A DNA stretch of 63,996 nucleotides, counting the filler, from Hyphochytrium catenoides (lineage: Eukaryota > Protista > Hyphochytriomycota), in the NCBI GenBank assembly GCA_900088475.1. It is 9 parts of 9 records of this genome, joined end to end, with 100 filler letters (N's around TTAATTAATTAA, not from the genome) between each part and the next. Parts side by side here need not be neighbours in the genome. Positions count along the whole stretch, not along the records: positions 3,563 to 29,898 come from FLMG01004265.1; 8 more parts are not named here. One strand, given 5' to 3'. How positions within the stretch are numbered: position 1 is the stretch's first letter; the number at the start of each line of letters is the position of its first letter. A model generated the notes under the pieces. It worked only from the letters and a program-made list of their open reading frames with translations, made no database searches and was not told the origin of the DNA. Both the position numbers and the translations under genes were made by a program. Shown in pieces: positions 3,563-29,898 of this stretch.

Positions 3563-6500
3563 ATAGTCTGTCAGTTTGTGTTTCTGATTTCTCGGTAGGA
3601 TGAAGGAGTACGGATATTTAAGGTTGACCAGCGTCTCCTCGTCTTCACCATCCAGCCGCCTTGCCTCTCGAATACCACTTAGAAAGGCGCCATGCGCAGT
3701 CGAAGGATATTCCTTAATGGTAGCTTCCCCGGCGAAGAGGAGGCGAAGGGACGAGCGAGCGGAGGGTGAAAGAGAACCTTTGAAGGCCACGGGCCTACCC
3801 ATGGCTTCGTAGTCTTCCCCAGAGGATCCAACAGGGAGGAATGAGTAGGAACCTCTCGCGTATTCATCTCTCCCCCATCGAGTGACATGGAAAGACACCG
3901 GGTCCGGCGCCTTGCGGGCTATCTAATTGGACAAAAGCACTAATGAGGGAACATTGAAGGAGACTTAACAAGATCGGCAAGGCTTCATGTCGTACCGTTC
4001 TAAGCACTGCCATAGCTTCCAAGACTAGTCGCTGNNNNNNNNNNNNNNNNNNNNNNNNNNNNNNNNNNNNNNNNNNNNNNNNNNNNNGTTGGACTACCTC
4101 CAGCTGGCGTCGCGTCCATGAAGAGGAAGAAGAGTCCCTTCTTCTCTCCAGTGTACCCCAGAAAGTCGGCACTATCATCCCAGAACTTTGTATCAAACCT
4201 AAGTACTATTTTATTAACGACTCCGTATCCTAGGCGTCGGATAGCGAGGAGTTTGTCTTGCGGCAGAGCTGGCCTGAACTTGATCACACTGGGTTTGTTG
4301 AGCCACAATACGTGAAAGGGGTAAGACAGAAACGATGACTTTGTGCTAAGTGGAAACGCAGATCGCCGAGGATGAGTGGTCATCAAGATGTAAGTGCAGA
4401 AGCAACTTTACGGTGGCACAACAGGGTAGATGATAAGATGAAGAATTTAGCTGGCACATCGCGGTAGTTACCAATATCACTTACTTGGCCTTCAATACTC
4501 CTAAAGGAACGGTGCAAACGACAGCGTCGCAAGAGAGAGAAGATCCATCTTTGAGCTCAAGCTTTACTCCCTCTTCATCATAGCTAACCACGTCCACAGC
4601 GGCATTAAGTCTAACATTCAGATCTCGCGCCAACAGAGACAAGATGGTAGAGAGTCCCGTTTCCACCATACAATGGTCACCCTTGAACTCATTGGGGTCA
4701 TCCTGAACGAGAGCAAGAATAGAGCGAAGCCTGCTGAGGACATCCCAGGGCACAATAAAGGAAATAATCAAGAAGGCCATTACCTGGTCCCAATGAAGAT
4801 GGGACAGTTCGCTTAGTGTGGCCCCGCAGGCAAACTCGATGTTAGCGCAGTGCCAGTTGAGAGCCCGTGACTATCAGATAGTGCATAGTGTAAGACAAGG
4901 AAGTCTATGACCCAACTGCCACTACACTATCAAACCTCGCATGTAGGACAACAGCAAAGCGAGACAGAATAGGCACAGATACAGCTCCAAAGATTGACAA
5001 TAGGACGAAGATGCATATGTAAAGCAGAACGCGGAGCTAACCTCCTCTGGTGAGAGCGATCTCCCTCTTTCCAATTGGTGCAGGATACCACCCATTACTT
5101 CCCTATTAACAAGGTTACAATATCGCGTCAAGGGACAGCTAAGGAGGTCATAAAGGACCAATGCTACTTACTGCAGTGGCTGATCTCTAAGCTTTGCCGG
5201 GCTGATTGTCCCCTCCGTCCTCCGCCGTCTCCTCTCATCGGCTCGCTCAAGCAGCTCCTAGGGAGAGGAAAGGGTAGAGTTAGGCGGGTTGAACTGAAGG
5301 TGCAAGGACGTTAATATCAAAGGCGGTGTTACATTGAATAAAGCCTCTGCAGCTCTGTCCACCTGCCTATCAAGGACTCTTCCGTCCGTATCATACAAGA
5401 TGCACTTCCTCATCCGCTTAAGGCCTAAATTCGCATCCACCGCTCTTTGGAGCGAGCGAAGTACGGGATCGAATAGAGTAACCAAAGAGACCGAGAGTAA
5501 GAAAAGGGCTTGATGGTAAAGGGACAGTTAGGATACGGCCAGTGAGGAGAAGATCGAGTAGGAGGAGCAAAGGAAGTCCTGCTCGTACTCCCCAGCACCA
5601 GTGAGATTCAAAGTACTTACAGAAGAGTCAGCGGATTCCTATTGATGCCATGGATGATGGCACCGCCTAACTCCGCCTTCCCTCCAGCTTCATCTCCAGC
5701 GGCATAGATTCTACCTCCAATACGGTCTCTCGCCTCCACTAAGCAACAACCGACACCATGATGACGAGACCACAAGAGAGAAGGTGAGAGGGGATAGCTC
5801 ATCTAAGGCGCCAAAGATGAAGGCAACGCCGCGCAAAGCATCGTTGAGAGTGGTTGGAGAAAGATGATACGAGGACGGAAGGCCCTCAGTCACAGCCTCA
5901 AAGGAATGTTGTACAGAGTCCAAGGGGCCAAACCCGTTACTGCTACAGTCGACGACCAACCTACCTACAAGTACATCATGTCCGCGATGTTTTAGCTCAG
6001 CGGCGCACGCCAGGCCTAAAGAGGGAGGGAAAGGGCGGCAGGTCTCCACAGTCAGGCAGAAGTTTTGGGCACAAGGATGTAGAGGACTCTGACGTACCTG
6101 CAATCCCAGCACCAATCACTATGACTTTCATACTCCTGGCTCGTTCTGCTAACTACGATAAAAGATTTCTTCCCACGAGTCCATCAGTGCTCCAGATACA
6201 GGATTCTGGCTAATGCACTAGCACTGCAAAACCAGGTAACGCTCAGATCTTCTTTCCTTTATCTTCGCCCTTCCGCCGTCGAGCTATTATACTTTCTCGC
6301 TCTGCCCCATCAGCGTCGTCAGCGTGCTGCTCCCGCTTCAGATATGCGAAGACAGACTGCCAGGTAAGAACTGGTCACAGTAAGAAGGATGAATCCACTA
6401 CCATGCTTGCAGACTCAGATGCCCACCATCACCTCCAGCTCTGCTGCCTTTCCATCGTCTAGCTCTATAAAAGTTGTTTGTCGCTCCTTGTGCCTTCTAT

Positions 6501-7117
6501 TCTTTGGACTACGTCCGACGCCCCATGACCTTTCTTCGTAGCTCCTTATTAGCCACTCTGCACATCGTTTTGACAGCTCTGTTCTCTCCTGCCATCATGA
6601 GCTTCACCAGGAAGGAAGGCGAAGGCGAGGGTAGAACTAGAGCCAGGACACCAGCAGCAGCCAAGGCAAACAGCACCTTCTGTCTCTTCTTCTCCTCTCT
6701 TTCTCTCTTTCACTCTCTTGTTGTCCCTTCTCTCTTCAGTCATCCATCACAACGGACTTCGAGTTGCAGTCCCTTCAAACACACGCTCCTACCTCATCCA
6801 CTAGATCAAACGCAGCGTTAAGGATCCAGTTTCGCTATGGCAGGACACTGCTATGGCAAACACATAGTCAAACCCAGATGTCGTCTCAAACCCACAGTCC
6901 GTGGAACATGATGATTGTGCCCGGTTCTTATCTGGGTTTCTACTAGAGAAACAGAAGAGAATCCCATCCACCCTCCTGTAGTAATATGCCCGGACCTGTT
7001 GATATCGGTAGAGTGGTTCAGCGTGTTTATGGGTGGATGTGGTAATATTTGCACACAAAGTATGGGCGTTTCGTTTAGGAAAGTGCCGTCCTTTTCTGTT
7101 CTCTCCCCCTTCCACTC

Positions 7118-7168
<51 letters not shown>

Positions 7169-7666
7169 GTCTCTCTGTTCTTCTCTCTCTTTCACTCTCT
7201 TTCACACTCTCTCTCTCTCTTCCCTTCTCTCTTTTTCTCACTCCCTACTTTCTCTCCCTCTTCCTGGCCCCTCCCTTTCTCTCTTCACCTCCTCCTCTGT
7301 ACCTCTGCCAGTTCATGTCTGACTGGCACTTCAAGCGCTCTTCTTCCCTTCACCTCAACTCGTTTGCATCTCTCTCCACCTTTATTCTTCTTCGTCCTGG
7401 TCAAGACTCAGGACTCATCTGATAGCTCAACAGTCACACCAGGAGCTTGGGGATAACAAGGGACGATGAGAGAGTGATGATGGTGCTAGTGAGGGGAGGA
7501 GATGCGGAAGGTTCAGGCGCAGCGCCGTGAGGCAGCTCAACCAAGATGCTGGCCTATAGAAGCTCCTAGTGCGAGAGGAAGGCCAAGCGAGCAGCGTGGA
7601 GAGGAAAGACACACTGAGGCCTGGCGCTTGTTCACAAGGCAGGGCCGGGCGGGCGGGGTTGTACAC
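3563..7666 (-). CDS. LSD1/KDM1-family FAD-dependent histone demethylase-like protein (SWIRM-like + amine oxidase, no tower); both ends run into gaps
   Basis: VIVIGAGIAGLACA...EARDRIGGRI (FAD binding), ELGGAIIHGINRNPL, NWHCANIEFACGATLSELSHLHWDQDD, CTVPLGVLK, LGYGVVNKIVLRF (catalytic Lys present), TRWGRDEYARGSYS, FAGEATIKEYPSTAHGAFLSG. Upstream exons (6200-7400) splice to AYYYRRRNWILNAA...SVFAYLKRE (SWIRM-like) and are less certain. Confidence 0.85.
7096..7300. repeat. (CT)n/(GA)n microsatellite, representative of many (also 30430-30720, 47220-47320, 52130-52670, 53210-53272, 57980-58040, 60488-60600, 63700-63996)
   Basis: Read directly; mostly intronic and often next to assembly gaps. Confidence 0.95.
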
Positions 7667-7761
7667 NNNNNNNNNNNNNNNNNNNNNNNNNNNNNNNNNN
7701 AGATAAGGCGGTTTAATATTATGATACAGCTTATAACTTACATCGGAGCCAGAGGATGCAG

Positions 7762-10700
7762 CTAATGATGCTCAGTCTCCGGCACTTTCTCTTCACTCAC
7801 ATTCGCAGATGAAGGTGGTTCTGGCTTTAGACTCTCTCGAATGTCCAACGAACCAGCCAGAGATCCTGCCGTCACTTTGTTTTCCCCAATAGAGGCAGCT
7901 GGGGAAGGAGAGCGTGCAGGACTGGCACTTGGCTGATCTGTCGTCTTTCTTTTCTTCCTTGCCTGAGCAGAGGCAGGAGGCATGAGTTTCCTCTTGTTAA
8001 CGCCCAAAAAGTCCTTCTTGGACACTTTCAGCTTGACCGCAGTATCATCATCCTCTCCTGTCTTCTGCATCTGGATGAATGCAGGCGACACGAACTCCTT
8101 TCGTTCCCCTTGCTTTTCTTCTTCCTTGTCTTCGGGGGGCACGTCATCTTCCCTTACAGGCGTCGTAGCGACGCTGCTGGATGGAGATGATAAAGTCTTC
8201 TTGCGGCGCGAGGCCTCTAGAATGTTACGCACAGTCCGGACACGGCTCTGAGGACAGTCTACGAGGTCGATGGGGCCCGCAGCATTGCCCCTGAGGTCAT
8301 TCCCTTCTAAAACAGCTTTGCCTCCCTTGTAGACCCTCACCCCGGGCCCTCCATTGCTCCCGATGACGTTGTCCCTTAGCAGCGCCGTCCCAAGGAAGAG
8401 GGAGAAGGAGCTTGACTCGTTATTCATGAGAGAGTTGTTTAGAAGCGCAGCAGAGCCATTGGAGATAAAGATTGCACTTCCAGTCGCCGCTCCATAGAGC
8501 TTGCAATTTGCCATAAGGAGCTGGCTGCCTGCGTGTTCGGAAGAGGAGACAGAAATGAGCAGTGGAAGGAGGAAGAGGTGAAAAGAGGAAGCGGACAGGG
8601 GGAATATAAGTAAAGCGATTCTTGATAAGCTGGAGATCAAAGATGAGAATGAAGATCACAGCCTTCAGTTAGCTGGTCAGCCGCTAGCCATCTCGTGGTT
8701 CGTAAGCTATCTCCCCTCTTTATATGGCTGAAGGTGAATGAGTAAACAGCTAGGTAGAAGAAGTAGCAGTAGGCCCAGGGAACAGCGGGACATATGGTAT
8801 GAGAGAAGAGAGAGAGAGAGAAGAAGGAAGAAAATTACCTCCTGACACCACGACAGTAGCCCCATAGCTGCCTGCATGATCTACGTCGCATGAATAAATC
8901 CTGACCGTCGACTGCTGCGATAGATGAAGGGTACAGGGCTCGGGGGATACCTCTCCAGTGCGGTCTGGCATCGCCTTCTTGACCGTTACGCCCTCCAGCT
9001 GTCCTCGTGTCCCCTGCCACTCGAGAGAGCCCTTCACTCGGATCAAGACGTTGGGCCCATCGCCCAGAATGCGGACGGGAACGGTGATGCGGAGCTTATT
9101 GACCAGATGCAGGCCACCAGCAAGCAATAGCGTGTCCCCCGCTACACTGTGAGCTATCGCATCACCAAGGTCCGTAAACCTTCTCTCCCTCTGGATTCTC
9201 CTTTCCATGCTTTCTGTCCGTTCTCGCATTTCTCTCTCTTCACGTTCACGAATATCTTCAGCTTCAAAAGAAGGCTCCACGTGCAGCCACAGAGCTCTAT
9301 TATTGACTGCAGCCTTCCAAGACCGACAAAGCAAGGATGCAACGGGGCGCTCGGATGCGGGATTCAGGTACCTGCCGTGGGATTGTAGATGTTAGCGTGC
9401 CTAGATGCGCGAAGACAAATGCAAATGAAACCAGTCATAGGTCGCGCTTCGTATCTTTACTGGTTAAACGTTACCTTGCTATGCGTTGTATGAGATCTGT
9501 TGGCATTCCTGCGTACTTCAGTCTCATCACGCGCTCTCTCTCCTCTCTCTTCACTAGCACAGCAGGTTTGGTCCAAGTGGCCTCATGCGTGTCCATGTCA
9601 TAGAAGTAAGTATGGCCGCTTCCGTTATCTACCATTTCAACCCAGGACTCCCCTGTCATACGCCGACGCTTCTGTTGCTGCCATAAACTTCGGCGCTCTC
9701 TGCATTTGAGGGGCAGAGCGGTTAGATCGACGCCATGGAGCTTGAGGCCAGGAGAAGAGGAAAGCTACAATTTGGGCATATTAGCGATGGATGGATAATC
9801 ATAGCCTCTGAAAATTGCGAAGCGACGATAATATTCGCAAGAGACAGCTTTGAGCCCAGAAAAGAGACAATGCCCTCAACAGGTGACCACTCCGCAAGTG
9901 TAGACTAACCTTTTGAATATGCTTTCAAAGGAGGCTCCGAGGTCCATCTGTCCTGCGATAAGCTCCCCACTCTGTAGCTGTTCTTCTTCCTCTCTCTCCT
10001 TCTGGCGCTCAATCTCCTCTACATCTATTTCTTCAGCCTATTGCCAGTTAAGCCAGTCAGACCGGGACACATCATCCCAACTTACTTCTGCTATTATCTG
10101 GTCACCTTTCTTACATCAACCTCCCGCAAAGACGCTGTATCATTGTAACTCCCGAATTTGGTCGCAAACCCGCCTTTACCGTCTCTCTCATGCTCTCTGT
10201 GGCTCCGAATTTTCTAGTTCACGTCTTTTCCCTCGTTGTGTGGTTACCTCTTCCTCTATGGCTCCAGTAGCCGGAACGGTGACCCAACCCCAAGGCGGGT
10301 CCACTTGCTCTCTAAAGTGTAGCGCTGTCCTTTCTATTGGTCTCAGACTTGCTTCCAGGTTATCGAGGGAAACAGATTGACGCCAAGCCTGCACATTAAG
10401 CGATAACGTCAGGGCAGCCAGCGAGTCCCAGGTCCAACCGTAGCTGTCTTCTCTCGAAGCTCCTTGATAGATAGTTCCATTTGGGTCTCTACCGTTAGAG
10501 CCCAAATTTCCTCCCAGGCGTACCTGGAGTTGTCTCTCTTGTTCCTCTTCCAGCTCCTTTTCCCGTCGCTTCTCTTCTTCCCTTTCCATCTTAACCTGGA
10601 CAGAGAGTGATAAGGAGCTCTGTAGTTAGACTTTCCATGGATGACGGTGAACGGAGTGCTCAGGAGTAATGCTAGTTTACCTTTTCTTTGAGTTCCTTCC

Positions 10701-13700
10701 GCCTCAGCGCGGCTTCTGCCTTCAAATCTATCTTGTCTTTCATCTCTTTGGTTATGGAGCCCTCCGGTCTTTCTCCTTCTCCCTCTGCATCCGACACTTC
10801 TTCATCTTCAACAGCCTCTGCTATATAATAATTTAGTGCGAGATATCTGAGGAGTCTGGTTCTCGGGCTCCTCTCCCTCTTCTCTTTCTCTGCACCTTCC
10901 TCCCTAATCCACTTCTTTCTCTTCGGACACACCTTCGGGCTCATTCTCCATTGCTGTGGAGGGGACTGCACGCTCTGCAAAGTCCAAGTCATCGACTTCA
11001 GCCTCCTTTTGGGCTCCTAGAAGAGTAGAAGTCAGCGACATGTTCGTCCGGACCCGCCAAGCCGAACGGCTTCACAGCGGACACCGGAAGGGGCTCGAGA
11101 CAAGCAACCCGATAGGAGTAGAGATTAGGCCAAAAGTGGAGAGCTCCCTATGTGGGTGTATTGAGACAGGTAATGAACGAGAAGGACCATTTACCTTTCA
11201 TTGCATTGAAGTCATCTTCATCTTCAAGTCGTGCCATTGCCGCCTCGACGTCGGCGGCAGACACCTCAGAGCCGTCCGATAAGTCTTCCTCATCTTCTTC
11301 CTCCAATCCTGCTTCTGATTGTAGGTCTATACTGTTCCTTCTCTCCTCCTCTACCTCTCTCTTCTCATCCTCGGTTAGCTCTTGTATAGGCCCAACAAGT
11401 TCTCTGAGAGACGCCTTGGAAAAGAACTCGGTGTTGAACTTCCCTTTTGACATCACCAGAAAGTCTAGATGACGCTTCTGGTTCGCCTTCCTGCAGAGAC
11501 CATTAGTCGCTACGCTTTGTTCATGAACTGACGGGAGAACATTGCCCAGCATTCCTTCTCTCGTCAAAATCACTATTACGATCCACCGTCGATTGCTCTG
11601 AGTTATAGTGATATCAGGACTCCCATGGTTATAAACAACCTTTGCACCACGTTCTTTCCCTTAGCAAGTGATGACTGCTTCTCTTTATCAACCTTGCGCT
11701 GCGCTATTCTCCCTCTCTCCTTCTCCTTCTTCCCCCACCCCAACCCCCTCTGGAACGTACGTTAGTATGTTTTCCTCCACGGTGTGCTCACTAATGAGTC
11801 TATAAATATGAACATCTCTTGTTTGCCCAATCCGATGGGCCCGATCCTGGGCTTGTGCATCCATCGCTGGATTCCAATCACTATCATAGAATATAACAGT
11901 GTCTGCACCAGTTAGATTGATACCCAGGCCCCCTGATCGAGTCGAAAGAATAAATACGAAGATTTTCTCCTCTTCGTTGAACTTGTCCATGAGCCGCTGT
12001 CTTTGCTCCACTTTGGTGCTGCCGTCGAGACGCAAGTAAGAGTGCCCATGTATGTTTAGAAAGATCTCCAGAATGTCGAGCATCGAGCTCATCTGAGTGA
12101 AGATAAGGCATCGATGGTGTCCTCTCTTGAGCTCGCGTAGGAGTACATCCAGCTCCTGCATTGGTCCACAGGAAGATGTGAAGGTCCAGATTGATGCGCC
12201 CAAAGCCGATGGAGTAGCAGTAAGAATGAGAGATCAGCACAGTGCAGAAACGGAGAGAAACAGAGGACCGCTTACTCTAAGCACCGGTCAATGGGACAAG
12301 ACAAGGTTGTGACTCTTACTCTAAAGTGAATCGTACCTGTAACTTTCCGCAGTCAAATTGCAGAAGGCGCTTGTCTGGGAAGAAGATCTGAGTCCTTTTG
12401 TGCGCCTCATAGTGTGCTGCCACGTGAGGGGCCAGGCACACATTTAATCTTTCTCTAATCTCTCCGCTCTCTCGATCTCGTCTTGCCCAGCCACGATTAA
12501 AGGAAATCTGAGGGACTGCTGAACGGGCCCGCGGCACGTAGACCATAATGTGAGGGACGATAGGGAGCAGAAAGGACGATATTTTATCTTCCAGTCTGGG
12601 CACCAACGCACAGAGGCTTTGTGTTATCCCGAGAAGATGGGCTGGGCTTTGCCTGGCGCCCGGTACTGCTTGAGCTCCCTTCTGAGGTACAGTCAGGAAA
12701 GAACGAAGCCGCCATCCGTACAATGGAGACTTGCCGCATCTATTACATCGGCGAAAAGAGACGATAGGTCAGAGATACAGCTCGAAAACGACCATAGACC
12801 GAGCTGCTAAAAAGGCCATAACTCAAAAGCATGCAAGGGATGGAAGGCAGGCAAGTCAAGGGGAAATGTGGAAGGGCTTCGCTCAGTTGTCGTCAACTTT
12901 CGATCGCCCCGAATAAAGTCAGAACTGACTGCGACACTAGAAGGGATCGAATTACCGTTCTTTGTTCAATGCTGCTAATCTTGTTCTTCTGGCGTCAATC
13001 TCAACTCTCCGCCTTGCATGCAAGGCTATCAAGGCCCGCACTAGGTCATCGGGCGCCTGAGCTCCGAGAGCTGGGGGCTGAGGAAGGGCTGGGAGCAAAC
13101 CCCAGGCGTCTTCTTTTGAATGAAAGAGGCGGGACGGGGGTCTCTGTTCGCGTATTCTTTCTGCTTCCACTTTATCGGGACCCGTCATTTCTAGCCTGAG
13201 GAGGCTGCCGTTTAGAAGGTCCAAAGGACTCTGCTCCCTCGAATCCCTCAAGTTGTTCTCTATCTCTATAACCTCCGAAGGGTAAGCAAGTAGTAGTCCT
13301 TCCATGTCGAAGGAGCTAACGATAGGACGGGGCTCAAACAAATCTGGGTGATTGCACACCTTGAGAATTAAGGTAGGTTAGGTGGGCAGAGCGCGGTCGA
13401 CACCTCAAAGTCAGAAAGGCTGACGGCTGAGATATGAAACTCGGATGAGGCAGGTATATATGGAGCTTGCCCGTCACGCAGGTTAGGCACAAGCAAAGCG
13501 ATAGGATAGTAGATCGCATTGACGCGGAGGTCAAGAGCACCCAGACAAAGGTAAGGAGGACTTTGAATTGGACAGATCACCATGATTAGACTGATGGAGA
13601 TTGAACAAGACAGCTATCCCGAAATAAAGCTTAAACAACAAAGGGCGAACTCTCCGCCTCCCACCTTTCTGAGCTGCATAAGGACGTTCATCATGCCCAA

Positions 13701-16700
13701 GAAGTTGCCTCCCCCGCTCATTGCTCGTCTTGTGCTGCTGCGGGAGATAAAGTCCTCGTAAAGAAAGCGTTGCCGCTTGGAGAGCTTGCAGCGGATAATA
13801 TGCTCGTACTTGGCCTACCGAGGAAAGCGCTAATAAGATTATGAAGAGCAATGAGGCAAAGCGTTCATACCGGAAGCTGCTTCTCAACATCCTTTTTCAG
13901 TCTTCGCAGTAGAAACGGCCGGATAACACCATGCAAACGGCTAACCAACCCCTCGTCCACCGCGGCCTCGCCCTCTACCATGGAGGAGAGAGGATTGCTA
14001 AACCAGTAGCCAAACTCTTTGCGTGACCTAAAGGACAAAGATTAGAATAAGTCCGGTACTCTCCACTACCAGGTTGAAAGAACTTTCATAAAAGCAAGTG
14101 ATAGTCAAAGGGAAATGGGCCAGCGGTAAGACTGAAGGGTACAGTTGGAACTTGCTGGGGAACACTAACTCCTGCGAGCCACTAGCTCCTTGCACGGCGA
14201 TGCTTCGCCCTGAAAGTTACCTGAAGACATGAGGCATAAGGAAGTGCATCAAACTCCATAGCTCCATCAGGTCATTTTGAAGAGGAGTTCCAGTCAACAA
14301 CAGTCGACGCTGGCTGTTAAAACTCAAAAGAACCTGCCAGCGTTGGCTCTTGAAGTTCTTGATATTGTGAGCCTCATCAAGGATGAGGAAGTACCTATCA
14401 AGTTGAGGATAGAGGCATTGGTTATTCGAGAGACGGAGCTGGAAGAGGAAACCAACTGATGTGCGTTGGCTTTCTAAAGCAGGACTTGTGGTGATATCAA
14501 TTGAAAGACGAGCAGCATAGGAGACAACTACGGCTGGCAATAACTACGCTTTAGGAGTGCGGAATGGACAACGTTGGCGGCATTACCATTTCTTTCTCTT
14601 CAGCGCCTGTGAATCTTGGACAACGAGCTGGTAGGACGTGATGCAGATATGAAAGGCGTTGGGCTTTGTCCAACCCTGACGTAGCTCCTTCCGACGCTTA
14701 GCTGAACCATAATAGGTCAAGACCTATGCACATTTCAAGCAGGAAGGAAAGGAAGAGAGACATATTAAGTGCTTCAGCCCAGAGTCAGGCTTTATCTCTT
14801 ATCGCCAACAGATGGTGTTGCCTCAACATAATTCATATGAACATTTCTGCCTCGACCTCAATGGACTCTCTTACATTCACTTTGAAGACAATAAACTCTA
14901 GGCCTAAGCACCCTCCCCTCGCCCATCTACCATCACAAGTATCATACCTTAAAACCAGGACACCATCTCTTAAACTCCATCTCCCAGTTGACTAGGCAAG
15001 ACGTCGGGACGACAATAAGATGCGGTCCCCAGATGCCCCTTGAGCCAGCCAAATGAGCGAGCAAGGAAATGGTCTGAATCGTCTTGCCAAGGCCCATCTA
15101 AGGAAGAGAAATCGATAAGGAACAACTAAGAACAACAGGAGGCGAGTTGAAAAGGAGAGTTTCACGGAAAGAGGAAAGATAGACCCATTCAAGCATTAAC
15201 AAAGATAGATGTACAGTCAAGCTCGAACCGAAGCTACGGCGCCGCCTCACTCGTCAGTAAAGGAGTAACAGTTTCACATACGAAAGCCCAAATGAATCCG
15301 CCCTCACCTCGTCGGCTAAGATTCCGTTCAGTCTGCGCTCGTACATAGATACTAGCCAGTTCAGTCCAATTGCCTGATACTCTCTGAGCTTCAGGCGCTG
15401 AACTAGGAGGAATGGTCGAGGGACTATCCGAGCAGCCCTTGCGTCTCGGTCATAGGCATCGAGAGCACTGCTGTTCTTCTCCGTTTCCTCCTCCTCGCCT
15501 TGTGCAGGTGAGGCGGTGGATCTCTCCGTAGCACCTCTGTCCTTCCTTTCGGTACCTGTCAGCGAGGAAGTGTGTTCGCTGTCATCCCCACTAGTCTCTG
15601 CCTCATCTCCTTCCTCCAAATACTTTGCGTATCTGGCTCTCAACTCATCTAATGGTTCTTCCGCCGCTCGACTCAGATCTTCTATTTCTTGACTCACTTC
15701 CTCTTGTCCCATAGCTTTCTCTGCTGCGGCGATTGTGGTTTCATCATCTGCTCCGTCGCTTTCCGGCGCAAAGTCACTCTCCTCCCCAAGTTGTTCGTCC
15801 TCTTGCTTAATCCCAACGTCTTGCTTGTACTTCTGAGTGCCAGAAGAAGCGCTTTCCTCGCTCTCTGTCCCACTTTCATCTCCTTCTCTTTCATCCTCTA
15901 AGCTGCTGGACTCTGCCTCCATCATCTTTGCATACTGTGCCCTTAGCACTTCCACTGGAACTTCGCTGTCTTGTTGAAGGGCCGCTATCTCCTCCTGGAC
16001 ATTTTGCAGGCTTGTTTCTCTCTCAGCTTGCGCTATGGTCGCTTCATCGTCTGATGATTCAGCCATGGGGACGAACTCGTTGTCATCCTCTACTGCTTCG
16101 AGCTCTTTCCCTTCGCCGCATTGAGCGCCATTCCCACTGTCCACTTCGGCTCCACTCGTTTTCGTTTGAGGGTCCAGACCAAGAAGGCCTTTGACCTGAG
16201 TTCCATCATGGGCACCATTTTCCGTCCCTCCGACCGTTACCTCCTCATCACTACCTTCCCCAGTCTCTTCCTCTTCTTCCGCTCCCTCTTCCTCCATCAT
16301 CTGTGCATACTGTGCCCTGAGCACCTCTATTGAGACCTCACTATCCTGTCGTAAAGCAGCTATCTCCTCCTCTGTGTCCTTTGTAGTTGTTTCCCGCTCC
16401 GCTCGTTCGATTGTCTCCTCGTCGTCTGATGACTCTACTACTGGGACAAACTCCTTATCTCCCTCATCGCCCGATATGCCAGCATAATCATTTTCGTCTT
16501 CCTGATCTTGCAAGCGGACCTCGTCCCCCATGTTCTCCGTTCCTAGTCCTTTGGTTTCCTTACACTCCTCTTGAGCCTGCATTTCTCCTTTCTCTCCAGC
16601 TTCTTGACCACTCTCCTCCTTTTCGCTGCTTAGCCCTTCCAGCATCTCCTTATATTTGGCTCGCAGCTCCTCTATCGGCACCTCAACATCGTCCTTTAGG

Positions 16701-18101
16701 CCTGCTATTTCCTCTTCAGCCTCGTCTTTCCGCTGCTCTTTTTCAGCCTCTGCCAAAGTTGTCTCGTCATCCTGTTCCTCTTCTGGCACATAATCTTCCG
16801 GATCGTCCTCTTCCCCCTCTTCTGAATCCATTTCCTCTTCTTCTTCGCCTTCGGAGACCGGAGAGTCCGTAGTATCCCTTAAGAGATCAGTGGACTCATG
16901 ACTGCGACACTCTCCTCCTTCTAACGTTGACGCCAGAGCAACAGAGTACTTCTCTGTCTGGCCCACCAAGAATCGCAGGTGCTGATCCATAGATCTCTTC
17001 CTTTTCTCATCATAGATAAGCTTTTGCTTATAAGCGACAATCTTGTCAATTTTTGCCCAAAACTTTTTTATGTCTCTTCCGATCCTGGCGGCCGTTCTCT
17101 TTCTATCTGCTTCCCTTTGCTGACAAGACAATGAGAAGGGTCAGACTATGGCAACATGCGAGTGACGGGTGCGTTTAAGGAGAGGTGAACGGAGATGCGA
17201 CTATCCGTTGAGCTAGGCGAAGGATAGACACGGACCCAATCCGGAGACGTAAAGACAGACGATAAAGTCAGCATGGAAAGAAGGAGGAAACGTGAGAGGA
17301 CGAGAAGCAGTGGAGGGAGAGCGGCTAGAATAAAACAGGAGAGAGCGGAGAGCCAAACGGGTCCTATAAATGACTAACCTTTGCCTTGCGACTGTCAATG
17401 TTTGCCTTGTTCTTATGGTACTGCTTCACCGCCTTCGCCACCTTCCTCGCCATTGTCTGCTTCCATCGTCTCTCCTCAGCAAAGTCGTTGGACATCCACA
17501 TCTAGATAATGGTCAATATTAGGGGTCTAAACACGACTTCCGACGTCTCAGTCCACGGCAGGGCTACCAAAAGGACTGTTCTGCTTGTTCAAAGTGCTCC
17601 CTCCACCACCAGAATGCTATCTCAAGCGAGACCACCGTCAGCTTAGCGCTTGACTCTTGTCTCGGTCTCTTTCCTCCATCATTCTATTCTGTTGTCCCCT
17701 CTAGCATGCTACCGCCTTTGTGATCTTAGCTTTGGAGTGTATGATCATCAGCTTACCATTTCCATGAGAACATAGTCATAGTGAGACTTCCCTTTCTCGG
17801 GCGGATCCTCGGCCTTAGCGATAGGTTTGCCCCCAGTTAGCGCTTGCAGCCGCTCCTCTACCGCTTGTTTCCTAGGAAGTATCTCCTCCACAGTCGTCAG
17901 CTTCTCACATGCGACTGCCTCGCTCCCCTCGGGACCTTCTAACGCTTCTTCTTGGAATACCGGCGGCTTTACGTTCTGCAAAGGCTCAGCGAAGGCAAAT
18001 CGGCCTATCTCAATGGGTTCCAAATGGCCCCGTCCGCCCTTGGTGGTTCCAAGGAGCGGCGGCGCTTTCCCATTATGACTCGAGATCTCGGCGTCACCCA
18101 T
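7762..18101 (-). CDS. SWR1: SWR1/PIE1/SRCAP-type SNF2 chromatin remodeler with C-terminal WW, F-box and right-handed beta-helix domains
   Basis: HSA region ([25 protein letters not shown]), [119 protein letters not shown]. An in-frame exon chain continues through WW (9471-9659), F-box (about 9300-9510) and beta-helix (about 8200-9150) to TAG at 7762. The start codon is uncertain. Confidence 0.92.
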
Positions 18102-19160: not shown

Positions 19161-22081
19161 TTGACTGGACCGAGCTTCTTCCCCTTTCCTTGCATTGACT
19201 CCGACAGATTGCACAATGAAGGGGGCAGAGTCACGAAGTGGGGCCTGCCAGATCTGTTGTCGTTGGTTGCCCGAGGGCACTCAGCTTGCCTGCCTCTTAA
19301 GCTGTCTTTCTTTACTAGTCATATGCGTCGTTCCTGCCATCTCATTCCTAAGACTGCCCGCATCCTCGCAAGGGCTCTCCAGAGAGTGGGAATCGCTTCT
19401 GTAAGCAGAACCTGACGCTCGCTTCCGCGTTTACCATCTTACCCCCCTCATTTGAAGCCATCAGCAAACCCGCAACAGCCATCTTATGGCCTGCCTGTTC
19501 TCGGCACAAGCCCTAGCCCTTTGGGTGGGTTCTATGTCGTACCGCGCCTTGGCGATCCGTAACCTCTAAGACTTGGTCTCCTGTAGCTCGACAGCTTGTG
19601 GCAGTTTGCCCTAATTGTGACGCTCATGGGAATCTTCGTTGATACTTTAGTTCCAGCCGCCCTTTGCAGCGCGGGTATCAGCATCTGTCGGATGATGATG
19701 GCCGGAGAACTTGGAACGTGGGTTGATCATGAAGATCATGTCAGAACCATAACCGCAAGTAAGGGCCAGATCAATACGAATGCAGGGCAAAAGAAGAGGA
19801 GAGAGTAAAGATGAAGGTGAAACAAAGGTAACTTGACGCAAGACGGTCAGGTACTAAGCATGTGCTTGAAGGCACTATAGGGAGTGGTGTGAGTCTTCTG
19901 TCCAGCTGTCTCATGCTAGGATTCCTGGCAACGTCTCCTGAGGTGACCGGTAAAAGACGCCCGGAACTGTCATGGCGTGTTCTGGCCCTGTATTCGGCAT
20001 TGCTGGCGGCCTCAATCATCGGTAGCCCTCTTAACTCCACACTTAACATCTTTTATCTTCTACTAGAGCCCACTCGATGACCTTGACCCATTCTTCCAGT
20101 CATGGCCTCCTCTACTGCTTTTGCAGCGCCGTTTCGGCTTCACTGTCACTCCAATGGCGTTCTCCTAAAGTGGAGTTGACACAATGGCGAGTTCTATACA
20201 GGAAGAATTTTATTGTCCGGCTAATCCGTCATGCTTCCTTCCTCCTTAGGGCAGATTATGAAGCAAGCTCAGAGCCTAGCTTTAGAGCGTAGCATCCTAA
20301 TCCCAATGGCGTCAAACCACTTCCGTAGTCTCACCAGCCTGAAGAGGAGGCTAGAGTGTCTAGAAATTGCCTTCCTGGTAATCACTAGTTAAAGGGGTAT
20401 GCCCCGGTCGGAGTCACTCGTCTTCGATATCTCCCCACCAACTCCTCTACATGTCCCTCCTACCAGCAACTATAGTCCTCGATACTGTCAGTGATCTACT
20501 AAGTGCTCGCTCATTTATCCACAACGTCCAGATTCTCGGACCCATAACTGTGGCGGCCGCTCTCAGTATGGGCAATAACCTTACCGGGGTTGCTCCGGTC
20601 CTGGTTGGCAGCTGGCTTATCGGTAGGTTTTTCCCAAAGAGCCATGTACTGCCAATTGACACTCGATCAGCTGACTCGCAATTCTAGGTGCGACAAGCGT
20701 ACTTTCCTTGCCGCTACAGGTTGCGCTTCTATTAGAGGCCATTCACTTCCTACCCCAACTAGGTAGTCCGTTCCGCCTACCCCCTGCTTTTCTGCCCATA
20801 TAGCTGTTTTAAGACCTAGAATCCACGGCGTGCGATTGGTGATCTCTGCTCACCCTTGCCGTGATTGAAACCTTGAGCTCTGCTTTAGATCTCGTTGCGC
20901 AATCCACGTTTCTGAGCAGTAATTGCCCATCCTGTAGAGCGCCGAGACCGAATTTCGCAGCGCCAGCTGAGCACCATTGAGCGTCTGTGGGAGAACGGAG
21001 TTCAGTTTTATGAGCATCCGCTATTCCTAGCCAGCTTCGCCTACTGTCTCTTGCATGCAAATGTGTTAGAGTTCGGAGCGCTGAGTACGTCTTACCTCGT
21101 TTGGCGACAGGTGAGAATAAGTAGAATCTGCGTCAGGCAACCAGGTAGACCGTACTCTTCTCCTCTTATAACTATAAAAAGGCGTGTGCAGAACCTGAGA
21201 TCCCTCAAGCTCTACCTGAAGTCTAAGAAAAGTCTAGATATGTCAGGAAATGGCGTGGTGGGGAGAGAAGACATTAAGCACGTCTTCTTATGAGCCTCTA
21301 CTTCCTTTGCTTAGATACCTGTCATGGATATTAGCCTAGCCCAAGGGGCCGGTGCATTTCTTTGCGGGCTACCATTAGCCTTCTCCCATCAACTAGGAAA
21401 AGCTTTTGGCTCTGTGGAGAATTTGGCTCTTGTTGCAGGCTGGGCGTTCTTTCTGTCGCTGCTACCCATTGCAGTGTCACATCGCCTTGGTATGTAGTCC
21501 GAGCTGAGGTGGTATCGAGGGGTCCTCACAACAGCTTGGCTAACTATTTTTCCAAACACACTATAGGCAAAGGAGATATGGTGTTACTTTCCTGTCTTGC
21601 TCTCTCTCGCTTCGCATTCGGATGCGCGACGCTTAGTGAGCAGAAGCTCTTGCAGACATGGGTCCCGGTAGAAATAAGGGGCACTCTCTTAGAAGTGCAG
21701 GTCAGCTTTTGCGAAATGCCCGTCCGTCTTCCAAGAAAATGGCACTTCTTAACTCTAAATCTCTCTCTTGTCTCCTTTTCTGAATCTGCCACCATGCAAC
21801 TCCACGCACCAAAGGGTGCGATATCGCAGTCAATGAGTTTGATGGTGCAAATATTGGGCATAGCCGTCAGCAACCCGCGGGACTTTTCATACCTAGTCAC
21901 CGTCAGTCTTCTCGCGCTCTTTGTATCAGCCATAATTCTTCTCTTTTGGAGAATTGCTAAGCGTCCCCCGCGTGTTATACATGACCCCGAGGTCTCCCAA
22001 GGCGCGTCCAGCACTAAGAGTAGCCCAGCCTTTTTGGCTACCGCAAACAGGACGATTAGTTTGGAACAGATTACCATTTGA
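19161..22081 (+). CDS. Ferroportin (SLC40/IREG)-like MFS transporter, divergent; 5' end uncertain
   Basis: LDSLWQFALIVTL...GELGTWVD (TM1-2, cf. GDRMWHFA...IGDWVD), NVLEFGALSTSYL, ALSRFAFGCATLSEQKLLQTWVPVEIRGTLLEVQ (cf. [23 protein letters not shown]..NGVQ), SNPRDFSYLVTVS (cf. APNPEAFGLLVLIS). Stop TGA at 22079-22081. Confidence 0.75.
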
Positions 22082-24142: not shown

Positions 24143-24188
24143 GCTGCTAAACAGAGCTTTTCGGCTGCTAAACAGAGCTTCTCGGCTG
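24143..24188. repeat. 21-bp tandem repeat, about 2.2 copies (GCTGCTAAACAGAGCTTYTCG)
   Basis: Read directly: units at 24143-24163 and 24164-24184. Confidence 0.85.
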
Positions 24189-28519: not shown

Positions 28520-29898
28520 ATGGAGATAGGTGTATCTGGCGTGACCGGCTCAGCTTTGCAGTCACTGACGCAGCCAGGAGTCGATGCTGAGCTCGTTACG
28601 TACCCTTCTCCGCCCGCACAGACTGACTCGGGAGCCGCAATCATAGGGAACACATATCACACCACACCCGAACCCACTGTCAAGGACATTGAGGCAGGGG
28701 CTGCGGTAGACCTGCAGCGCCTGGAGAGCGATCATAGCCTGACAAGCAATAAGTCTGTGGCACTCTTCCTCAAGGCAGTACGATCTAGCGTCAGTCCATC
28801 AGTTCAGCCTGATGATCCTGAGAGCGCTGTAAGAAATGGGAGTCAATCCGAGCAAAAATGGCCTTCACCAGAGATGGAGGCCTTACTTGAAAGCAATTTC
28901 TCAGCAGCAACTTTGGAACAGATCCTTGACCTTATGGGTGGCCAAGAGAGCTTCATCACCAACGTGGCAAGGCTTCTGGAGATGGCTCTGGGAGAAGAAG
29001 TCCCAAGGCTTACAATCCGCTTCACTGACGTCGAAGTGAGCGCAAGAGTGTCTCCTGCCGCTGGTGCGGGGTCACAGGCCACCACCATTGGAGGTGCTTT
29101 GAAGGGCATCGCCACTGGTAAGCTGGATTTTTAAGCCCAACTCACAACGGCGCTCTTGCTTCTTATCAGTGTAGGAGATATTAACCATTGACCGATCTCT
29201 CTCAGGATGTTTTAGGCGCCGTCAGCAGCGAAGGTAAAAATTCTTCAGAACTGCACAGGCAAGATCCGACCGGGGAAAATGACTTTACTCCTAGGCGGAC
29301 CTGGGAGTGGCAAGAGTTCCCTCCTCAAAGTTCTTAGTGGCCGTCTTATGGACAACAAGCACACGAATGTGAAGGGCAGAGTGGATTACAACGGCGTTGA
29401 CATTGCCAGCGTTCCAGATAAAGTCTTATCATCGGTAGGCTACGTTACACAGGTAGGTTGAGACTTCTTCAGACCATCACAAGGCAAGCATAGCTCACAT
29501 CTGCTTTCATCCGTATGTGGCTATTGTTGCAGCGTGATATTCACACACCAACGCTGACTGTGGAAGAAACGGTTCAGTTCTCTTTTGCCTGCCTTGATAG
29601 TAAATCTCAGTCTAAGGCAGCAGTGTCCACTCCCTCAAATCTTGAGGCTGATCCCAAGCTCAGGAAGGCCAAAGAGCTTCTAGAAGTCTTGCACAGGCGA
29701 CGGCCCCAGCTGATCCTGAAGGTCCTGGGACTTGAGGGTTGCCGGAAGACTGTGATTGGCAATGCCATGCTCCGCGGAGTCAGCGGGGGTGAAAAGAAGC
29801 GTGTGACAATGGCGGAGGTTCTGGTTCGACGCAATAGAGCGCTTTTCATGGACGAGATTAGCACCGGACTTGACAGTGCGGCAACCTTTGACATTTGC
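28520..29898 (+). CDS. ABCG/PDR-type ABC transporter, 5' portion (NBD1), truncated by a contig break
   Basis: VPRLTIRFTDVEVSA, ILQNCTGKIRPGKMTLLLGGPGSGKS (Walker A), DIHTPTLTVEET, LRGVSGGEKKRVT (signature), FMDEISTGLDSAATFDI. Confidence 0.93.

Follow-up and report, generated by a model that had tools for sequence, protein, structure and literature searches.

We describe here what is very probably a single gene of Hyphochytrium catenoides, joining a chromatin-remodeling motor of the SWR1/SRCAP kind to a tail that resembles the substrate receptors of ubiquitin ligases. It lies in a stretch of 63,996 nucleotides (nt) from assembly GCA_900088475.1, referred to below as the window, within the part taken from FLMG01004265.1 (3,563-29,898), and runs on the minus strand from 18101 to 7762; all positions are those of the window. 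As read from the sequence, roughly the first 1750 residues of the predicted product are an orthologue of the SWR1/SRCAP ATPase, and roughly the last 460 hold a compact beta-helix preceded by a WW domain and an F-box. The full domain order is HSA, a split SNF2 ATPase of the SWR1/SRCAP type, an acidic linker, WW, an F-box interrupted by an intron, and a right-handed beta-helix. On these sequence features the gene is a member of a conserved stramenopile SWR1-WW-F-box-beta-helix family, which we define here, and this SWR1 variant is real and conserved, and functionally uncharacterised. Taken as a whole, one fused gene is likely the best explanation of the locus, with the canonical mechanism of a Skp1-Cul1-F-box (SCF) ubiquitin ligase given about even weight within it.

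The gene model has 20 exons and 19 introns, with all junctions traced by hand from the sequence. Exons 1-5 lie at 18101-17757, 17501-17379, 17119-15308, 15097-14948 and 14723-14587; exons 6-10 at 14394-14221, 14027-13871, 13814-13665, 13359-12956 and 12739-12337; exons 11-15 at 12155-11761, 11490-11195, 11016-10933, 10820-10681 and 10595-10524; and exons 16-20 at 10388-10248, 10037-9910, 9699-9475, 9371-8839 and 8528-7762. All 19 introns are GT-AG, with lengths of 56-310 bp. The predicted start is an ATG at 18101, and the coding sequence of 6636 nt comprises 2211 codons plus a TAG stop; the phases match throughout, and when stop codons were counted over the joined exon DNA, none was found in frame. 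A preliminary description of the locus had quoted the junctions NAMKG/AQKEAE, PE/AEAVE, KEK/VKM, LQ/AWRQ, EEE/AEEID and IFKR/ERRSLW, and each of these is present, bounded by GT-AG and in phase. The gene end that it gave at 7762 was found as the TAG at 7764-7762; its upper limit of 11500 fell short, as the gene reaches 18101. Its central proposal, that a SWR1/SRCAP ATPase, a WW domain, an F-box and a beta-helix belong to one gene, is borne out, and many divergent relatives have this fusion too.

The one-gene model is supported by comparison with these relatives. At 2211 residues the predicted protein is within the 1955-2330 residues spanned by the full-length fused homologues. In tblastn, the homologues P0033, P0079 (Nitzschia sp. 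Nitz4), P0081 (Seminavis robusta) and P0086 matched colinearly from 17501, in the HSA domain, to ~8834, and the Chrysoparadoxa protein P0009 carried this colinearity on to 8263. When the exons were entered as separate rows in a mafft alignment against 13 homologues, each linker exon had its counterpart in the fused proteins.

Three kinds of evidence from relatives are independent of intron prediction: a genomic open reading frame (ORF), de novo transcripts, and a diatom locus read directly from its DNA. P0033, a protein of 2097 residues with all six domains (HSA, SNF2, Helicase_C, WW, F-box, Beta_helix) in the same order, is encoded by an uninterrupted 6294-nt ORF on two Joint Genome Institute metagenome contigs (L001 2328-8621, and L002). 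Among the de novo transcripts of the Marine Microbial Eukaryote Transcriptome Sequencing Project (MMETSP), P0086 encodes 2204 residues in an ORF of type 'complete' with all six domains, and P0094 encodes 2006 residues, likewise 'complete', with five domains, its Beta_helix match falling short of an expect value (E) of 0.01. The third case is Nitzschia inconspicua JAGRRH010000006.1, where the fusion is annotated as two adjacent models (L003 4083-8823 and 9001-10921). The first, the SWR1 model, ends within an intron after DRAHR, and the second, KAG7368541.1 ('WW domain-containing protein'), takes as its start a Met that is internal to the SWR1 motif NLDILVMDQGNF. An ORF at L003 8845-10200 runs uninterrupted from helicase motif VI through the WW domain and F-box. 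The two-gene split could suggest separate genes; on reading the DNA, we discarded that interpretation and take the split to be an annotation artefact.

To survey the tail more widely, an exhaustive phmmer search of exon 19, which holds half of the F-box and the start of the beta-helix, was made against 1.84 billion protein representatives. It returned 29 matches, the best at 7e-9 and 31% identity; two of them, a bacterial TPS protein and an immunoglobulin protein, were set aside as unrelated. Nineteen of the 27 true matches reach upstream of the WW domain into the SWR1 linker or motor when aligned to P0033, and the remaining eight are short fragments starting within the module. None of the 27 is a free-standing copy of the tail, and none has an unrelated N-terminus. 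The short WW/F-box proteins in the set (P0002, P0003, P0008, P0015 and others) were tried as free-standing genes and rejected, since each aligns upstream into the SWR1 linker or motor. In Pfam scans of the matches, Helicase_C, together with SNF2 where the protein was long enough, stood beside the F-box and WW or Beta_helix in one polypeptide. The Hyphochytrium protein itself, or a close relative of it, was absent from the 1.84-billion library, where the best match is 31-32% identical.

The carriers of the fusion include at least eight diatom species, from Seminavis, Cylindrotheca, Nitzschia (two species), Cyclotella, Cyclostephanos, Skeletonema, Thalassiosira and Epithemia. Fused entries are found in Seminavis robusta (CAB9516050.1, named PHOTOPERIOD-INDEPENDENT EARLY FLOWERING 1), Cylindrotheca closterium (CAJ1958026.1), Cyclostephanos tholiformis (KAL3811882.1), Cyclotella cryptica (KAL3795139.1), Epithemia (KAL7565038.1) and Nitzschia sp. 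Nitz4 (EukProt). Chrysoparadoxa australica (Ochrophyta, PX clade) is also a carrier, by the partial protein CAM9514029.1. The EukProt protein GSMAST32..., which from its identifier is probably that of a MAST-3 marine stramenopile, has Helicase_C, Beta_helix and a weak F-box of 17.4 bits, below the cut-off of 20.5, and the brown alga Hapterophycus contributes an 84-residue fragment that covers part of the beta-helix only. Several metagenomic lineages carry the fusion as well. A search with the Chrysoparadoxa tail as query gave, besides that protein itself, a single metagenomic cluster, so the breadth outside diatoms rests on few sequences. The stramenopile fusion proteins are alike in domain order, linker motifs and length, and are colinear with the Hyphochytrium gene; they differ from it in intron content, several of them being intron-free or intron-poor in contrast to its 19 introns. 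Together with a GC content of about 50%, this intron richness gives an impression, and no more than that, of a source other than an oomycete or a diatom. This distribution points to an origin early in stramenopiles, where we infer that the fusion arose by capture of a SKIP5/FBXO11-like F-box gene and a WW domain.

The motor half of the protein is well conserved. The HSA domain (16928-17782) runs from late in exon 1 through exon 2 into exon 3; Pfam HSA matched exon 2 at 7.3e-12 (17367-17501), and tblastn with P0033, P0079 and P0081 covered 17501-17379 and 17122-16928. We take the domain to begin at 17782, with HYDYVLMEM at the end of exon 1, a start that was read by eye after the pattern of other SWR1 proteins and that no tool scored. 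Between the HSA and the ATPase, a motif scan of exon 3 found four tandem copies of an acidic motif of ~52 residues (15593-16771), with the pattern DDE-T-I..AE, EEIAAL and E-hydrophobic-LRAxY (E-V-LRAQYA), and the region aligned loosely with the homologues (tblastn). In SWR1/SRCAP proteins a similar acidic motif stands ahead of the motor, in a region to which the binding of histone dimers has been mapped. Lobe 1 of the SNF2 ATPase (13336-15379, beginning late in exon 3 and ending early in exon 9) matched Pfam SNF2-rel_dom in six consecutive exons over profile positions 1-290, with Walker A as GLGKT in exon 4 and the DEAH box as LILDEAHN in exon 6. The motor exons are 74-93% identical to the homologues by tblastn. 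Lobe 2 (Helicase_C, 11826-12149, exon 11) matched Pfam at 1.4e-27 in the segment 11691-12233 and keeps helicase motif VI intact. The lobes are separated by a long insertion (12337-13335, exons 9-10), with ~270 residues from SNF2-rel_dom to Helicase_C, which gave weak colinear tblastn matches to the fused homologues and no Pfam match. Such an insertion splitting the ATPase lobes is a hallmark of the SWR1/INO80 group.

Searches of the PDB with phmmer placed the motor more closely. The Helicase_C exon scored 223 bits against SRCAP, 211 against Swr1, 166 against INO80 and 134 against EP400, and the homologue P0033 scored 840 bits against SRCAP, 696 against Swr1, 517 against EP400 and 483 against INO80. 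On these sequence scores the ATPase is of the SWR1/SRCAP subfamily, nearer SRCAP and Swr1 than INO80 or EP400. It shares with yeast Swr1, human SRCAP and Arabidopsis PIE1 the HSA, the split motor with its long insertion and a post-ATPase KANQKR segment. Those three proteins are the catalytic subunits of the SWR1/SRCAP complexes that deposit H2A.Z, and none of them is known to carry a WW domain, an F-box or a beta-helix. In keeping with the earlier statement that yeast Swr1 lacks an F-box, the alignment of P0033 to Swr1 halts at residue 1490 of 1514, where the module starts.

Beyond the motor, the linker (9910-11490, exons 12-17) is conserved, as judged by mafft against the 13 homologues and by tblastn. 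The spacing from Helicase_C to WW is ~308 residues, compared to 283-303 in P0001 and P0033. The WW domain (9564-9650, exon 18) keeps both Trp residues and the Pro, and passed the Pfam WW cut-off of 26.9 bits with 31.8 bits (1.5e-7, segment 9474-9764), accompanied by a weak WW_TCERG1 match. A profile of the WW-plus-F-box family matched the WW domains of PRPF40A (4.5e-8), TCERG1 (1.1e-6) and Prp40 (3.3e-6), and the WW fold in the model of the homologue P0002 matches the WW pairs of PRPF40A and Prp40. From its sequence we assign this WW to the PRP40/TCERG1 kind. The assignment makes reasonable the idea, put forward in the preliminary description, of a proline-rich ligand or one related to the RNA polymerase II C-terminal domain (CTD); a search of the gene's own protein for the WW ligand motifs PPxY, PPLP and poly-Pro found none.

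The predicted F-box (9284-9506) is divided by intron 18 (9474-9372) into an N-terminal half at the end of exon 18 (9506-9475), followed by a split Arg codon, and a C-terminal half at the start of exon 19 (9371-9284). It keeps the Arg and Trp that are invariant in the family and the near-invariant Cys. Homologues with an intact F-box pass the F-box-like gathering score, at 34.0, 33.1, 36.8 and 29.8 bits. In the WW-plus-F-box profile search, the F-box matched FBXO42 (3.7e-4), FBXL3 (1.3e-3) and FBXL5 (1.4e-3), and also SKP2 and FBXW7. Structure predictions were made on the homologue P0002 and refer to that protein. Its AlphaFold2 model of the WW-F-box region has a predicted local distance difference test (pLDDT) score of 84, and helices 58-88 resemble the three-helix F-box; superposed on SKP2 of the Skp1-Skp2 complex, the F-box model fits to 1.5 A over 41 columns with 36% identity.

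The right-handed parallel beta-helix (8257-9178) takes up the latter part of exon 19 and, beyond the intron 8838-8529, the opening part of exon 20. Pfam Beta_helix scored 5.1e-7, above its gathering score, on the segment 7765-8655, where NosD scored 3.3e-4, and residues 1101-1193 of the Chrysoparadoxa protein P0009 matched 8538-8263 by tblastn. It is a single helix of ~200 residues in which invariant Gly and Arg positions are conserved across lineages. In the AlphaFold model of the P0002 tail (pLDDT 88) a WW sheet and a long helix can be made out, the F-box is formed by three short helices, and the beta-helix stacks about ten successive strand layers. In a Foldseek search of the PDB this beta-helix matched the folds of AlgE4, pectate lyase and pectin methylesterase, which are generic beta-helix enzymes, and no FBXO10/11 or SKIP5 entry was among the PDB matches listed. 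The protein ends in a Ser/Pro/Lys-rich tail of ~160 residues (7765-8256, exon 20) that is not conserved in homologues, and beyond residue 133 of the segment 7765-8655 Pfam gave no match. A basic patch in this region, ARKKRK (~7961-7944), looks like a candidate nuclear localisation signal.

A further profile was built from 35 homologous C-terminal modules with the Hyphochytrium sequence excluded. It matched just 4 of 857 six-frame stop-to-stop segments, all of them on the minus strand, adjacent and colinear: 10037-9879 (hidden Markov model (HMM) positions 18-48, E 1.2e-7), 9764-9474 (60-134, E 2.3e-21), 9391-8753 (136-303, E 1.9e-31) and 8655-7765 (299-405, E 1.6e-5). On this profile, the F-box is interrupted by its intron between positions 134 and 136, as expected for a clean splice with one split codon. 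Nine of the 12 invariant columns of the module and 30 of the 49 near-invariant ones are kept, among them both WW Trp residues, the WW Pro, the F-box Arg, Cys and Trp, and most of the beta-helix glycines. In all lineages the tail (9370-8840) changes at a far higher rate than the motor; among diatoms its identity is 44-59%.

If the fusion works as established F-box proteins do, the F-box would bind Skp1 and bring the Cul1-Rbx1 ubiquitin-ligase core onto the remodeler. The beta-helix could then serve as the substrate-binding surface, from a position equivalent to that of the CASH/beta-helix of FBXO10/11 and SKIP5-type proteins, and the PRP40/TCERG1-type WW would read a proline-rich partner. The ~300-residue acidic linker would tether the module to ATPase lobe 2; as the tail departs from the motor at this point, it would sit near the H2A-H2B or H2A.Z-H2B dimer under exchange. 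A chromatin-bound target, or the remodeler itself, might thus be ubiquitinated where H2A.Z is deposited. Candidate targets would be evicted H2A-H2B, H2A.Z, a subunit of the SWR1 complex or, through the PRP40-type WW, a factor acting in transcription or splicing. By analogy with known F-box proteins, we put this canonical, substrate-targeting SCF version at evens. The larger proposal, that stramenopiles hard-wired an SCF substrate receptor onto an H2A.Z-depositing motor and so made exchange and ubiquitination one coupled reaction, is tentative, and we would place it somewhat short of an even chance.

Several observations weigh against these readings and lend what support there is to the alternatives. 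RNA sequencing runs were sought for 7701-12300 and none was listed, so that the one-gene case rests on comparison. Of the F-box, only the C-terminal half (HMM 15-42) scores, because intron 18 splits the motif, and at 17.7 bits it stays under the Pfam F-box cut-off of 20.5, with 17.1 bits for F-box-like. Exons 14-15 lie within a variable acidic/basic stretch, are placed by phase and composition only, and are the least certain of the model; and retention of intron 16 gives an in-frame stop at 10188, with a module-less isoform possible. The locus could be two neighbouring genes on the same strand, with the SWR1 gene continuing past the donor at 10247 as far as the stop at 10188, in the ORF 10188-10589, and a second gene starting at an ATG (9659) that precedes the WW, much as NCBI annotates N. 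inconspicua; the exons would then be joined in phase by coincidence. We hold this to be very improbable. The candidate start Met aligns with an internal Leu of the relatives, which makes it an internal residue rather than a gene start; fused proteins conserve both exon 17 and the 13 residues preceding this Met, the segment before the WW aligning in mafft with REKARLRSDKKRRKL-TGENW of the homologues. The N. inconspicua split is contradicted by the ORF spanning motif VI to the F-box, and the uninterrupted genomic ORF and complete transcripts of other relatives cover both halves. A different set of observations concerns the divergence of the module. Its identity to fused relatives is 24-33%; in a tree of the exon-19 region the Hyphochytrium tail is unplaced, on an end branch of 4.25 changes per column; three of the 12 invariant columns (R to K, N to H and G to A) and 19 of the 49 near-invariant ones differ. 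The tail might on these grounds be a decaying remnant of an ancestral fusion, in frame and non-functional in this lineage. However, no stop or frameshift occurs over ~1650 nt in four exons and the splice sites are intact, the key WW, F-box and glycine residues are kept, the changes are mostly conservative, and the profile still matches at E values of 1e-31 and 1e-21; we consider a remnant just as improbable as a pair of genes.

A more serious alternative accepts the fusion and questions the biochemistry. Skp1 and cullin binding, the substrate and H2A.Z exchange are predictions, which is a further point against the preferred reading, and the same sequence and structural evidence fits a non-canonical F-box equally well. 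Skp1 would here be a structural or regulatory subunit, or the SCF and the COP9 signalosome (CSN) would control the stability of the remodeler. Skp1 has non-SCF precedents in KDM2B/PRC1.1, Ctf13/CBF3, Rcy1 and RAVE; a module that is never free-standing in the library would suit a dedicated remodeler subunit, and the WW finds no PPxY or PPLP ligand inside the protein. Yet a beta-helix with invariant Gly and Arg residues across lineages is more easily understood as a ligand-binding surface, and FBXO10/11 and SKIP5-type proteins, which have the same layout, are taken as SCF receptors. We regard a non-canonical role as rather unlikely, and favour one fused gene whose F-box may act in the canonical way.

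A major eukaryotic group, including the diatoms that account for a large share of ocean photosynthesis, appears to carry a SWR1 fused to a receptor-like module. SWR1/SRCAP is the conserved enzyme that installs H2A.Z at promoters; if the F-box is active, the fusion would be a natural experiment in which histone-variant exchange and ubiquitination are physically linked, and the protein a hybrid of remodeler and ubiquitin ligase without counterpart in animals, fungi or plants. We found no published description of a SWR1/F-box fusion in open-access text, including that on chromatin and ubiquitin-system evolution. Oomycete entries named for an SNF2 helicase and F-box, mentioned in the preliminary description, could not be verified. 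Public fused entries bear generic names (PIE1, p400, 'hypothetical', 'WW domain-containing'), and names of this kind hide the fusion in databases. Annotation matters here, as at least one public genome, that of N. inconspicua, splits the gene.

The surroundings of the gene hold several other features, though an Rfam search gave no match. Assembly gaps (runs of N) lie at 7667-7700 and 4035-4087; the former is ~60 bp downstream of the stop codon and leaves the 3' untranslated region incomplete. Downstream of the 3' end, an intergenic (CT)n microsatellite of ~75 copies (7115-7261) gives rise, on either strand, to long SLSL/ERER ORFs that are spurious. A multi-exon flavin amine oxidase gene (3566-6131, minus strand; Pfam Amino_oxidase in four exon pieces at 9e-7 to 2.7e-16) is interrupted by the gap at 4035-4087 and is cut at its 3' end by the edge of the sequence part. 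On the plus strand are a ferroportin-like C-terminal exon (21362-22081; FPN1 1.2e-7) and the first part of an ABC transporter (28520-29898; ABC_tran 1.3e-7 on 29515-29898) that runs off the end of the part. A 21-bp tandem repeat of 2.2 copies with 96% matches lies at 24143-24188 in an otherwise unannotated stretch.

The layout of the tail, with an F-box followed directly by a right-handed beta-helix, is that of plant SKIP5-type proteins and of animal FBXO10 and FBXO11; these are free-standing proteins, whereas the tail described here is fused. The preliminary description had called the module FBXO11-like, which holds for architecture and fold and fails at the level of sequence. The exhaustive exon-19 search gave no FBXO10/11 match at E<=1e-3 and likewise no SKIP5-type sequence match, and Pfam scans of the Hyphochytrium exons and of the homologues found no zf-UBR. 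FBXO11 has three CASH blocks, in contrast to the one short helix of the fusion tail. Language-model features gave 0.96 for SKIP5 and 0.91 for FBXO11. The best predicted-structure match to the F-box and helix is a streptophyte F-box cluster of 270 residues (template modelling (TM) score 0.70 by target, 2.6 A over 215 residues), with an FBX10 cluster lower in the ranking (TM 0.50 by query). The tail is nearer to plant SKIP5-type proteins than to FBXO10/11; it is not a member of the FBXO10/FBXO11 family, the likeness being one of layout and fold only.

Nucleic-acid motors that carry a ubiquitin-ligase element in the same polypeptide have precedents in FBH1/FBXO18 and in the Snf2-RING proteins Rad5, HLTF and SHPRH. 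FBH1 is a UvrD-type helicase, and in Rad5 and HLTF the ligase element is a RING set into the motor, in place of an F-box tail; none of FBH1, Rad5, HLTF and SHPRH is known to exchange histone variants. Among chromatin enzymes, KDM2A and KDM2B (FBXL11 and FBXL10) have an F-box that binds SKP1, and differ from the fusion in being JmjC demethylases with CXXC/PHD and leucine-rich repeat domains. The F-box of KDM2B works in the variant complex PRC1.1 and not as a degradation receptor, and it thus provides a model for how the F-box of the SWR1 fusion might act outside an SCF.

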